DNA of 64,000 nt from Schizochytrium sp. TIO01. Its lineage: Eukaryota; Protista; Bigyra: Labyrinthulomycetes. Under the pieces are notes generated by a model. That model was not told the origin of the DNA, did no database searches, and saw only the letters and a program-made list of their open reading frames with translations. The stretch covers positions 8,290,761 to 8,354,760 of the forward strand of contig SMSO01000031.1 in NCBI GenBank assembly GCA_004764695.1, written 5' to 3'. Positions 31,796 to 41,197 of this stretch are shown piece after piece (position 1 is the stretch's first letter; the number at the start of each line of letters is the position of its first letter). The translations under genes were made by a program, and so were the position numbers.

Positions 31796-34700
31796 ATGTC
31801 AGACCACCCACGTGATGTCTATGCCCTTGAACAGCTTCGGAATGGCGCTACAACGTTGAGGTAAGTTAACATCGTACTAGCTCGCTTGCTTGCTTGCTTG
31901 CTTGCCTGCTTTCTTGCTTGTTTGCTTGCTTGTTTGCTTGCTTGTTTGCTTGCTTGCTTGCTTGCTTGCTTGCTTGCTTGCTTGCTTGCTTGCTTGCTTG
32001 CTTGCTTGCTTGCTTGCTTGCTTGCTTGCTTGCTTGCTTGCTTGCTTGCTTGCTTGCTTGCTTGCTTGCTTGCTTGCTTGCTTGCTTGCTTGCTTGCTTG
32101 CTTGCTTGCTTGCTTGCTTGCTTGCTTGCTTGCTTGCTTGCTTGCTTGCTTGCTTGCTTGCTTGCTTGCTTGCTTGCTTGCTTGCTTGCTTGCTTTATTT
32201 GCACGGTGTTGCTCTTGTCGCTCTTGTTTTGCAAGTTTATGCAATCTCTTGTTTGTTTGGTTTGTTTGTTTGTTTGATGAATGGATGGATGGATGCATGG
32301 ATAAGTTCTCTGTTTGAGTGAGTATACATCCATCAAACAAAGAGCAAAATGACAACACAACAAAGATAAATGCTGAAAGCCAACCTAGATCACTCACGTC
32401 CATGCATGCATGCGTGCATCTATTGTAATATGTAACGTGTAATGTATTGCTTGCCATCATTCAATCAAACCGACAGTCTTGCAGGCAACTATATCGGCGA
32501 CGGGGGCGCCAAGGCAGTGGCTGCGGCGCTGAAAGAGAACCGGTCGCTGACATCACTCAAGTAAGTTGTCTACGGAACACCGCAGCTCGTGGACTTGTTT
32601 GTACATGATGGTTGGTTTGTTGTTTGGTGGGTGGGTCGGTGTTGTTTTGCAAGTTTATGCAATTGCTTGTTTGTTTGTTCGTTTGGTTTGTTTGTTTGTT
32701 TGATGGATAGATGGATAGGTTGTCTGTTTGAGTGAGTATACATCCATCGAACAAAGAGCAAAATGACAACACAACAAAGATAAAATCCTGAAAGCCAACC
32801 TAGATCACTCACGTCCATGCATGCATGCATGCATCTATTGCATCTATTGCATCTATTGCATCTATTGCATCTATTGCATCTATTGCATCTATTGCATCTA
32901 TTGCATCTATTGCATCTATTGTAATATGCAACGTGTAATGTATTGCTTGCCATCATTCAATCAAACCGACAGTCTTGCAGGCACCTATATCGGCGACGGG
33001 GGCGCCAAGGCAGTGGCTGCGGCGCTGAAAGAGAACCGGTCGCTGACATCACTCAAGTAAGTTGTCTACGCAACACCGCAGCTCGTGGACTTGTTTGTAC
33101 ATGATGGTTGGTTTGTTGTTTGTTGGGTGGGTTGGTATTGTTTTGCAAGTTTATGCAATCGCTTGTTTGTTTGATGGATGGATGGGTTGTCTGTTTGAGT
33201 GAGTATACATCCATCGAACAAAGAGCAAAATGACAACACAACAAAGATAAATGCTGAAAGCCAACCTAGATCACTCACGTCCATGCATGCATGCGTGCAT
33301 CTATTGTAATATGTAACGTGTAATGTATTGCTTATCATCATTCAATCAAATCGACAGTCTTTATGGCAACCGGATCAGCTCAGAGGGCGCCAAGGCAGTG
33401 GCTGCGGCGCTGAAAGAGAACCGGTCGCTGACATCACTCAAGTAAGTTGTCTACGCAACACCGCAGCTCGTGGACTTGTTTGTACATGATGCTTGGTTTG
33501 TTGTTTGGTGGGTGGGTCGGTGTTGATTTGCAAGTTTATGCTATCGCTTGTTTGTTTGATGGATGGATGGGTTGTCTGTTTGAGTGAGTATACATCAATC
33601 GAACAAAGAGCAAAATGGCAACACAACAAAGATAAATGCTGAAAGCCAACCTAGATCACTCACGTCCATGCATGCATGCGTGCATCTATTGCATCTATTG
33701 TAATATGTAACGTGTAATGTATTGCTTGCCATCATTCAATCAAATCGACAGTCTTGAACGCAACAAAATCGGCTCAGAGGGCGCCAAGGCAGTGGCTGCG
33801 GCGCTGAAAGAGAACCGGTCGCTGACATCACTTGAGTAAGTTGTCTACGCAACACCGCAGCTGGTGGACTTGTTTGTACATTATGCTTGGTTTGTTGTTT
33901 GGTGGGTAGGTCGGTGTTGTTTTGCAAGTTTATGCAATCGCTTGTTTGTTTTATGGATGGATGGGTTGTCTGTTTGAGTGAGTATACATCAATCGAACAA
34001 AGAGCAAAATGACAACACAACAAAGATAAATGCTGAAAGCCAACCTAGATCACTCACGTCCATGCATGCATGCGTGCATCTATTGCATCTATTGTAATAT
34101 GTAACGTGTAATGTATTGCTTGCCATCATTCAATCAAATCGACAGTCTTCAGTGGAACGAGATCGGCTCAGAGGGCGCCAAGGCAGTTGCTGCGGCGCTG
34201 AAAGAGAACCGGTCGCTGACATCACTCAAGTAAGTTGTCTACGCAACACCACAGTTCGTGGACTTGTTTGTACATGATGGTTGGTTTGTTGTTTGGTGGG
34301 TGGGTCGGTGTTGTTTTGCAAGTTTATGCAATCGCTTGTTTGTTTGATGGATGGATGAGTTGTCTGTTTGAGTGAGTATACATCCATCGAACAAAGAGCA
34401 AAATGACAACACAACAAAGATAAAATCCTGAAAGCCAACCTAGATCACTCACGTCCATGCATGCATGCGTGCATCTATTGTAATATTTAACGTGTAATGT
34501 ATTGGTTGCCATCATTCAATCAAATCGACAGTCTTTTTGGCAACTATATCGGCTCAGAGGGCGCCAAGGCAGTGGCTGCGGCGCTGAAAGAGAACCGGTC
34601 GCTGACATCACTATCGTAAGTTGTCTACGCAACACCACAGCTCATGGACTTGTTTGTACATGATGCTTGCTCTGTCGTTTGGTGGGTGGGGCGGTGTTGT

Positions 34701-40700: not shown

Positions 40701-41197
40701 CAGCACAACGAAAGAAGCAGTATGACGTCTTCTTGTCACACGCTTGGGGCAAGTACAAGACTGTGCATAGCCTTGTATGCCGTGTAAGTGATGAGCTGCA
40801 GAACAATCATGGTATATCATGTTGGCTCGATCAGAACGAGGTGCAGCACGGCGACATTATTCGTACCATGACAGATGGTATTGACGATTCCACTCTTGGC
40901 ATCGTCTTTGTTACACGAGAATACATGGACAAGGTGAACTCTGATCCAAAAAAGAAAAAGAAAGACAACTGTCGGTTTGAGTTTAGGTACATGATGGAGA
41001 CAATGTCCCCCACTCGTTTGATACCGGTTGTCGTTGAAGAGGCGATGCAGGACATGGGAGAGTGGAAGTCTGTATTCCAAAGCCTCTGGGAGGGAATCCC
41101 TGTGTACGAAAGTATGACGCATGGTGGCAACGCAGATGAAGTCAAGGCACTAAGCGATAGGATTCGACGGGTTCTTAGTGAAATTAAAAATAAATAA
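31796..41197 (+). CDS. LRR-ROC-COR-TIR (Roco) protein, 18 exons, 1328 aa
   Basis: Exon 1 is 31796-31860 (MSDHPRDVYALEQLRNGATTL). Sixteen 84-nt exons start at 32477, 32973, 33358, 33752, 34146, 34532, 34922, 35307, 35692, 36076, 36461, 36862, 37259, 37653, 38047 and 38432, all CAG|...|GTRAG, phase 2. Last exon is 38620-41197. Total 3987 nt, no stops. ROC GKGGSGKT/WDYGGQE/VGTYLD; COR VPLRW/HELGVI/VVLQPQWL; TIR YDVFLSHAW/CWLD/CRFEF. Confidence 0.92.
31884..32195 (+). repeat. (GCTT)n microsatellite, about 78 units, in intron 1 of the Roco gene
   Basis: Directly visible. Confidence 0.98.
32196..38515 (+). repeat. Tandem array of 16 intron+LRR-exon units, mostly 384-401 bp (one 496 bp)
   Basis: Spacing of exon starts; near-identical introns. 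Confidence 0.97.

Follow-up and report, generated by a model that had tools for sequence, protein, structure and literature searches.

The window analysed here is a stretch of 64,000 nucleotides (nt) from the genome of the thraustochytrid Schizochytrium sp. TIO01 (contig SMSO01000031.1), and all coordinates below are positions in this window. Between 31796 and 41197 its forward strand carries a gene that we model as a short first exon, sixteen exons of 84 nt that encode one leucine-rich repeat (LRR) each, and a long terminal exon encoding a Roc-COR GTPase tandem and a TIR domain. The middle part of this gene is at the same time a tandem repeat with a period of 385 bp over 32911-38483 (14.3 copies, 92% matches according to Tandem Repeats Finder), and it is the near identity of the introns that makes the array read as a 385-bp satellite. 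In our judgement it is very probable that this satellite is a family of real, spliced genes and that the gene in the window is an intact member of it. The architecture shared with the paralogues, the intactness of the exons, the conservation of exon 1 and the splicing seen in the family argue that it is not a satellite with a lucky reading frame.

Exon 1 (31796-31860, 65 nt) opens with the ATG, comprises 21 codons and 2 further nt, encodes MSDHPRDVYALEQLRNGATTL and ends in the donor GAG/GTAAGT (the slash marks a splice site); the ATG, the open frame and the GTAAGT donor are kept in at least 12 paralogues. Intron 1 (31861-32476) contains a (GCTT)79 microsatellite at 31880-32195 and unit-like intron sequence from about 32217. 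The array of 16 cassettes extends over 32477-38515, each cassette being an 84-nt phase-2 exon accompanied by an intron of about 300 nt. The exons start at 32477, 32973, 33358, 33752, 34146, 34532, 34922, 35307, 35692, 36076, 36461, 36862, 37259, 37653, 38047 and 38432, and each ends 83 nt after its start. A script scan for CAG/84 nt/GT[AG]AG located all of them as intervals of exactly 84 nt between CAG/ and /GTAAG, the last having the donor /GTGAG. Every interval has a single open frame, giving 27 residues of the pattern LxxNxIGxEGAKAVAAALKENRSLTSL and a split codon at either end, i.e. one repeat of 28 amino acids (aa) of the ribonuclease inhibitor (RI)-like class. All introns are in phase 2: exon 1 leaves 2 nt, and each cassette takes 1 nt and leaves 2 nt.

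The last cassette (38432-38515) is a specialised variant (..AALDENHVLQEL), which also closes the arrays of the closest Roc-linked paralogues. It is separated by the last intron (38516-38619, 104 nt, GTGAG..TAG) from the terminal exon (38620-41197), which supplies 858 codons and the stop. The acceptor TAG/T at 38620 preserves the frame with the junction codon TAT; an alternative acceptor, CAG/ at 38602, was rejected, as it would create TAA. The spliced model sums to 65 + 16 x 84 (1344) + 2578 = 3987 nt, or 1328 codons and a stop in one open frame, and 34 of the 34 splice sites of the gene are intact. A first-pass annotation of this DNA had described just such an arrangement, with an 84-nt one-LRR exon in each repeat unit, phase-2 introns throughout and an open frame of 1328 aa made of exon 1, 16 LRR exons and a terminal exon; the splice-flank scan (16/16 exons) and the sum of the exon lengths bear it out. 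It had also drawn attention to a TATAAG upstream of the ATG. The motif is present (31747-31752, forward strand, 44-49 nt before the ATG) as a weak promoter candidate, but it is not conserved, its position reading TACAAG or TACACG in 12 paralogous heads, and we give it little weight for this reason.

Some irregularities of the array may be mentioned. Intron 2 holds, at 32830-32921, a (TGCATCTAT)10 expansion of a 9-mer that forms the start of the 385-bp unit and occurs in 1-10 copies per unit, hence the unit lengths of 385, 394 and 496. In cassette 11 (36461-36544; LGIAIIVSEG..) the Asn that is conserved in LxxN is missing, and in cassette 2 (32973-33056) Thr stands in its place; both cassettes are open, with intact splice sites.

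Pfam searches, carried out exon by exon, recognise in the terminal exon the Roc domain (PF08477; E=6.5e-18, 65.5 bits against a cut-off of 27), COR-A (PF16095; E=2.4e-11, 44.2 bits against 35.3) and TIR_2 (PF13676; E=6.3e-12, 46.5 bits against 28). COR-B (PF25497) stays below its cut-off (E=0.014), as does LRR_6 (PF13516) with a single 27-aa LRR exon, which is too short when taken alone (16 bits, E=0.012, cut-off 23.4); of the families for which the first-pass annotation had proposed a profile check (LRR_6, Roc, COR and TIR_2), Pfam thus recognises Roc, COR-A and TIR_2 and falls short for COR-B and, in single exons, for LRR_6. A profile of the 16 exons matches RI-like LRR proteins in the PDB (RSP15, the NOD2 LRR, GALA proteins and DRC5) with E values of 1e-8 to 4e-5. 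The Roc GTPase domain occupies 38756-39502, with the P-loop GKGGSGKT, the switch II motif DYGGQ and the G4 motif TYLD; the COR region (COR-A and COR-B, supported by Pfam COR-A and Foldseek) 39575-40657; and a bacterial-like TIR domain of the TIR_2 type 40718-41077. There is no Pfam match to NB-ARC or NACHT in the terminal exon, just a sub-threshold AAA_22 match at the P-loop.

An AlphaFold2 model of the terminal exon, built with 14 homologues (pLDDT 76, pTM 0.71), aligns in Foldseek over about 680-730 columns to the Roc-COR tandems of LRRK1, LRRK2 and the Roco proteins of C. tepidum (Chlorobium) and M. barkeri (Methanosarcina), with E values from 1e-17 to 1e-12 and with COR-B included (3dpu, 6hlu, 8e05). 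This alignment of the model to whole tandems indicates that the COR region is complete. The P-loop Lys, the DxxGQ motif and the Asp of the G4 TxxD do not vary among 15 homologues, 14 of which also keep the Thr of TxxD. The candidate catalytic Glu of the TIR domain (40979-40981; residue 768 of the terminal-exon open reading frame, residue 1257 of the spliced model) was assigned by the position of its motif, ..NCRFEF.., which is WCxxEL-like, rather than by structural superposition. It is present in 11 of the 12 aligned TIR-bearing homologues, and the nearest solved sequences to this domain are the bacterial TIR proteins 7uxr and 3h16. As predicted from its sequence, the encoded protein is a ROCO protein with LRRs, a Roc-COR GTPase and a C-terminal TIR domain that keeps the putative catalytic Glu.

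Two peculiarities were noticed in these domains. Between G1 and G3, Roc contains an insertion some 100 aa long (window 38975-39080), in which the model confidence falls below 50 at residues 107-132, and TIR has a lysine-rich loop (..DPKKKKKD..; 40940-40970) just before the helix of the catalytic Glu, shorter in Hondaea and absent in remoter homologues.

The gene is one of many. In the assembly (64.07 Mb) the terminal exon has at least 16 full-length paralogues, with 42-84% identity and few of them with stops, and at 16 of the 16 paralogous loci examined 84-nt AG/../GT exons with one LRR each lie upstream, 2-20 of them within the first 10 kb. In the distant paralogues the 84-nt exons are kept with unrelated introns and with periods of about 220-360 nt, which argues that the exon-per-LRR organisation is ancestral and that the satellite-like appearance reflects recent homogenisation. 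The end of the cassette exon followed by NNN and GTAA has 989 matches in the genome, and the intron alone at least 400 copies of 93-99% identity on at least 17 contigs. Nearly every chromosome end has such arrays, and their homogenisation extends from end to end. Stops or loss of splice sites in the homologous arrays, to which the first-pass annotation had looked as the sign of an error, are not frequent: 151 of the 152 copies of the exon core examined at 17 loci keep the acceptor, the open frame and the donor, and none of the 152 has a stop. By our rough estimate, decay at the rate of the introns together with random variable codons would break more than one in ten of the exon copies. The sole broken cassette, with its exon at about position 596 of locus L017 on the reverse strand, has AA in place of AG at the acceptor and an open frame.

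The best named homologues are proteins of Hondaea fermentalgiana with LRR_6, Roc, COR-A and TIR_2 domains and 42-44% identity, which bear automatic labels such as "LRRK2" or "NOD2" and contain 2-10 repeats of 28 aa of the same type. A metagenome search with the alignment yielded 80 loci of 19-28% identity, mostly short matches of the Roc-COR type, which we take for distant, largely bacterial-type ROCO genes.

Contigs from three sequencing runs guessed by software to be RNA (X1, X2 and X6, from three studies with three organism labels) were compared with those of a DNA-like run (X19). In the three runs, contigs depart from the genomic sequence at joints that start exactly at the predicted exon ends 33441, 33835, 34615, 36544, 36945, 37342 and 38130. 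On their right, the joints resume at the start of a cassette exon or a few bases inside it, and the letters in between consist of TCTT (the exon start) followed by other variable codons. Some joints match exons 10, 13 and 16 of the window gene with agreeing variable codons. Run X19 has a contig at none of the 15 listed joints. The pattern of a spliced junction, exon end + NNN + TCTT, has no match in the genome within 2 mismatches, against the 989 unspliced matches mentioned above; the intron-less form is therefore not part of the DNA of the assembly. In the RNA-like data the cassettes of this family are thus precisely spliced to one another. The spliced transcripts that the first-pass annotation had called for were accordingly found as cassette-to-cassette joints at the predicted sites, and the junction of the last cassette with the Roc exon is not among them.

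Variation within the cassettes is distributed very unevenly. Across 15 aligned units, nucleotide diversity (pi) is 0.30 at exon nt 1-25, 0.026 at nt 26-78 and 0.28 at nt 79-84, and in the introns it is 0.041, the highest 25-column window reaching 0.092. The diversity is concentrated in exon nt 5-25 and 82-84, with a boundary within a few nt of the acceptor, and it amounts to about 5 codons per repeat, the x in L-x-L-x-x-N-x-I-G-x. In LRR proteins of known structure, the x positions of the LxxLxLxxN motif face the concave beta-sheet, and by analogy the variable codons would lie on the binding face of the LRR. According to the Nei-Gojobori method, four variable codons have a non-synonymous divergence (dN) of 1.03, against a dN of 0.040 and a synonymous divergence (dS) of 0.061 elsewhere.

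The variable codons are decoupled from the sequence in which they are embedded. In a pooled set of 81 cassettes from eight loci, 118 pairs have flanks (the adjoining intron sequence) that are less than 1.25% diverged, and in these pairs the variable segment still differs by 29%. The figure of 29% stays level from one bin of flank divergence to the next, and over 2441 pairs the divergence of the variable segment has a Spearman rho of about 0.04 with that of the flanks. Somewhat closer flanks occur only in the thirteen pairs, mostly from a single array, whose variable segments are identical; these look like recent duplications of units, as in the case of cassettes 8 and 12 of the window. Introns within the array of the window are 92.1% identical, compared to 91.5% between arrays on other chromosomes, and most introns have their best match (97-98%) in another locus. 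The scaffold, made up of introns and framework codons, is homogenised across the whole genome, presumably through ectopic exchange among subtelomeres.

The position of the gene links it to a class of repeats that has already been described. A TTAGG telomere is about 21 kb away, and the gene is flanked by a 5S gene on one side and a subtelomeric 18S-28S unit on the other. Aurantiochytrium limacinum MYA-1381 has the same TTAGG telomere and the same layout of 5S genes and ribosomal DNA (rDNA) (bioRxiv 10.1101/2023.06.15.545109). In that genome, Group 0 of the LORE-TEARS comprises 94 elements with a median unit of 385 bp and a mean of 9.3 units (range 1.8-20.6), usually found between an 18S gene and the nearest 5S gene (bioRxiv 10.1101/2023.06.15.545109). 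The LORE-TEARS were presented as spacers without similarity to sequences in GenBank and with a possible role in the maintenance of chromosome ends (Collier et al., bioRxiv 10.1101/2023.06.15.545109), whereas the arrays described here are exons and introns of LRR genes. The two agree in the unit of about 385 bp, in the number of units (16 in the window) and in the location between 5S and 18S, and the product of the published figures (94 x 9.3, about 870 units) may be set beside the 989 cassettes counted by us, which include arrays of longer period. Because period, position and copy number all fit, we identify the Group 0 LORE-TEARS with these LRR exon-intron arrays, an identity judged by period, copy number and position and not by sequence. 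Paralogue arrays with a period of 413-453 bp are probably the Group 5 LORE-TEARS. The telomere, the rDNA layout and the homologues from Hondaea mark the host as a thraustochytrid, almost certainly A. limacinum itself or a species very near to it. In the literature searched, the term LORE-TEARS occurs in this one preprint only, and no paper was found that links ROCO or TIR genes to thraustochytrids.

Taken together, we consider it probable that the window contains an intact thraustochytrid LRR-Roc-COR-TIR gene for a non-self sensor of the innate immune type, and that the Group 0 LORE-TEARS are the exon arrays of such genes. For the immune or non-self-sensing role itself the chances appear slightly better than even. 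In the mechanism that we propose, the protein would be cytosolic and would consist of about 16 RI-like LRRs, the Roc-COR GTPase and the TIR domain. The LRR solenoid would bind variable ligands, non-self or pathogen-derived; Roc-COR would relay the binding as a switch and dimerisation module, in the place that NB-ARC or NACHT takes in NLRs; and the TIR domain would oligomerise and consume or convert NAD+, with defence signalling or cell death as the outcome. Thanks to the symmetric phase and the near-identical introns, the number and the order of the cassettes could change by unequal crossing-over and by ectopic exchange among subtelomeres, and the frame would stay unbroken.

Several observations weigh against this reading. 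Only a minority of the 385-bp arrays (about 13-16) precede a Roc-COR-TIR exon. Three other arrays that could be followed to their ends (L117:2579-3310 on the reverse strand, L129:1811-2515 and L128:2962-3309) close with a distinct last cassette (..LKVNWSLT.L); after an intron of some 250-280 nt comes a tail exon in compatible phase, which encodes about 110 aa and has no match in Pfam. This tail exon resembles window 46098-46349, the end of a second, LRR-only gene, and a contig of run X6 joins the exon end 35005 to AATGTCCGATG..., the start of the tail exon, at the predicted acceptor. The same cassettes thus feed at least two gene outputs, one with Roc-COR-TIR and one with a short tail. Furthermore, the best PDB matches of the LRR profile include axonemal proteins, which are not immune proteins, and no ligand, no GTPase or NADase activity and no infection phenotype is on record. 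The evidence for splicing has its own weaknesses: the RNA nature of the runs is a guess, none of them being on record as RNA and X1 being marked as probably DNA, and as the constant ends of the cassette exons are identical, the upstream partner of each joint is ambiguous. Most of the joined contigs carry variable codons of paralogues or of other strains, and among the contigs listed, the RNA-like ones over the Roc exon show 3-11 mismatches to the window per 100-200 nt. The support from splicing is accordingly at the level of the family and comprises neither the 38515 to 38620 junction nor a transcript of this particular copy. Exon skipping was considered for joints such as 33441 to 38432, and it cannot be read from them, since identical exon ends leave the upstream partner ambiguous.

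The differences just mentioned between the window and both the contigs over the Roc exon and most of the joined contigs are what would be expected if the window copy were a silent or reserve member of an expressed subtelomeric contingency family, active, if at all, only once recombination or switching has taken place. Silence is common among subtelomeric genes, this one lies 21 kb from the telomere, and some of its paralogues have stops. Nevertheless, no stop interrupts its frame and each of its 34 splice sites is intact, some joints fall on its exons 10, 13 and 16 with matching variable codons, and the runs may derive from other strains, so that we regard a silent copy as possible, if rather unlikely.

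It is also conceivable that the gene is real and that its LRRs serve conspecific self/non-self recognition (allorecognition, with cell death upon incompatibility) or some other kind of signalling rather than the recognition of pathogens. Fungal incompatibility genes typically have repeats that are highly conserved apart from a few hypervariable surface positions and that evolve in concert, the cells of thraustochytrids form ectoplasmic networks that contact one another, and the data do not identify the ligand. On the other hand, nothing specific points to allorecognition, TIR-coupled sensors in bacteria, plants and animals are mostly directed against pathogens, and the host carries mirusvirus elements; this alternative is, in our opinion, unlikely.

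It is tempting to go further and to consider the roughly 1000 cassettes as a reservoir for contingency or somatic diversification, in which mitotic exchange between subtelomeres, possibly together with exon skipping, would reshuffle their number and order. If this were true, clonal lineages would differ in their repertoires of LRR-Roc-COR-TIR and LRR-tail genes, and the system would be a protist counterpart of the assembly of lamprey VLRs or of the switching of subtelomeric antigen genes, used for sensing instead of evasion; we offer this as a speculation with little chance of being right.

Also very unlikely is a targeted mutational or templated diversification of the first 25 nt of the exon. 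The variable segment remains at about 29% divergence even where the flanks are 0.5% diverged, and the boundary near the acceptor is sharp. However, synonymous and non-synonymous sites in the variable codons are both saturated, and strong selection together with exchange of short tracts gives the same picture; no diversifying enzyme, template bank or repeat signature turned up, and none was looked for. Diversifying selection and short-tract exchange are the ordinary explanation of the variable codons. The source preprint describes the repeats as spacers that lack similarity to sequences in GenBank and proposes a role at chromosome ends, and the arrays are homogenised at nearly all of these ends. 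The reading as an exclusively non-coding spacer satellite, with a structural role at chromosome ends or rDNA and with incidental frame and splice-like sites, is hardly tenable given that 151 of the 152 exon copies are intact and all are stop-free, 989 exon ends keep GTAA, the variation is confined to the x positions of the LRR, one reading frame runs from the conserved ATG exon through the array into the Roc-COR-TIR exon, the 84-nt exons persist in distant paralogues despite unrelated introns, and intron-less junctions occur in the RNA-like runs only. The arrays may have a structural role besides coding.

The interpretation of the window gene as a modular LRR-Roc-COR-TIR sensor has its closest precedent in the brown algae. 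In the LRR-ROCO genes of Ectocarpus, each LRR is a 72-nt exon encoding 24 aa of the type GxxPxxLxxxxxLxxLxLxxNxLx (Zambounis et al. 2012, PMC3341825; PMC11378527). These genes, described in Ectocarpus (PMC3341825) and in four brown-algal species (PMC11378527), share with the window family a ROCO protein in a stramenopile, one LRR per exon of a fixed length divisible by three, and the possibility of in-frame gain, loss and swapping of exons; they too bear the marks of positive selection at residues for which a position on the concave side is predicted, and they were proposed as candidate immune receptors. In contrast to the window family, their introns hold inactivated or reverse-strand LRR exons and their proteins are without TIR. 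The exons of the window family are 84 nt long and encode 28-aa RI-like repeats, TIR follows COR, 151 of 152 exon copies are intact, and the family is subtelomeric, beside the rDNA, with about 989 cassettes. The gene in the window is therefore analogous to the brown-algal exon-per-LRR ROCO genes and does not belong to the same exon family; the first-pass annotation was apt in drawing this analogy and in stressing the other LRR class and the TIR output.

With the NLR and other STAND receptors that use TIR (plant TNLs, bacterial Avs and TIR-STAND proteins) the family has in common a repeat sensor with a hypervariable surface, an NTPase switch and a TIR domain with the catalytic Glu, as well as the existence of expanded, clustered and fast-evolving families. 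The switch in the window protein is, however, a Roc-COR GTPase and not an NB-ARC or NACHT ATPase, and the order of the parts is LRR, switch, TIR. Since it has no NB-ARC or NACHT domain, the protein may work like an NLR and is not a member of that family. A similar mode of evolution is known from the NLR-like genes of fungi, whose WD40, ANK or TPR repeats are nearly identical in DNA save for a few surface positions under diversifying selection, and in which concerted evolution goes along with changes of repeat number by unequal exchange. There, the repeats lie inside single exons, whereas in the family described here each repeat has its own exon and the homogenised unit includes the intron. Finally, LRRK1, LRRK2 and the bacterial Roco proteins (8e05, 8fo9, 6hlu, 3dpu, 4wnr) share the order LRR-Roc-COR and the Roc-COR fold with the window protein at 12-16% identity, but the latter is without kinase or WD40 and has TIR as its output.

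Candidate receptors of the ROCO type with one LRR per exon were thus already known in brown algae, and the architecture of the protein could be found in database entries for Hondaea. What is new is an RI-like cassette of 84 nt whose introns are homogenised, the TIR domain as output, the sheer number of cassettes (about 989, spread over nearly all chromosome ends), specificity codons that are completely decoupled from their flanks, the first, if indirect, evidence of splicing and the reading of the "spacer" repeats as exons. The published non-coding spacers of Aurantiochytrium become coding, and about 0.6% of the genome becomes a reservoir of hypervariable LRR exons. The idea of the exon-per-LRR ROCO receptor is extended to a distant, unicellular, heterotrophic stramenopile with another class of LRR and a TIR effector, and it provides a testable model of sensor, switch and effector outside the NLR family. 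With about 5 specificity codons decoupled from homogenised introns, the cassettes are also an unusually clean system for the study of concerted evolution combined with diversifying selection. The immune hypothesis is directly testable, because A. limacinum can be cultured and transformed and carries mirusviruses.

The remaining features of the window concern the chromosome end itself. The 5S gene (31213-31331, reverse strand) stands head to head with the LRR-Roc-COR-TIR gene and is transcribed away from the telomere. On the other side of the gene, a truncated 5S copy with its upstream spacer (42388-42514, 87% identical to 31264-31390) marks where a conserved subtelomere module begins; typical chromosome ends have a full 5S gene in this place, before the second, LRR-only gene. 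The latter, on the forward strand at about 43364-46021 (tblastn), has about 11 divergent RI-like LRRs, one per small exon, and ends in ..VFEYVEEKHEEKELLANSMIC*; about 20 copies with 94-96% identity are found in the genome, just upstream of 18S genes. A full 18S-5.8S-28S unit of 5532 bp follows on the forward strand (47959-53490), 9.3 kb from the TTAGG telomere and transcribed towards it. The telomere repeats (62754-63340) consist of (TTAGG)n from 62754 and of (CCTAA)n from 63040. As (TTAGG)n running into (CCTAA)n represents a telomere-to-telomere join, contig C30 strings several chromosomes together, and small-subunit rRNA genes that face one another inside other contigs agree with such joining. 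A region of contig C13 (4.00-4.09 Mb), where three or more arrays are grouped with two Roc-COR-TIR exons and both orientations occur, is probably either another join of chromosome ends or a cluster of receptor genes.

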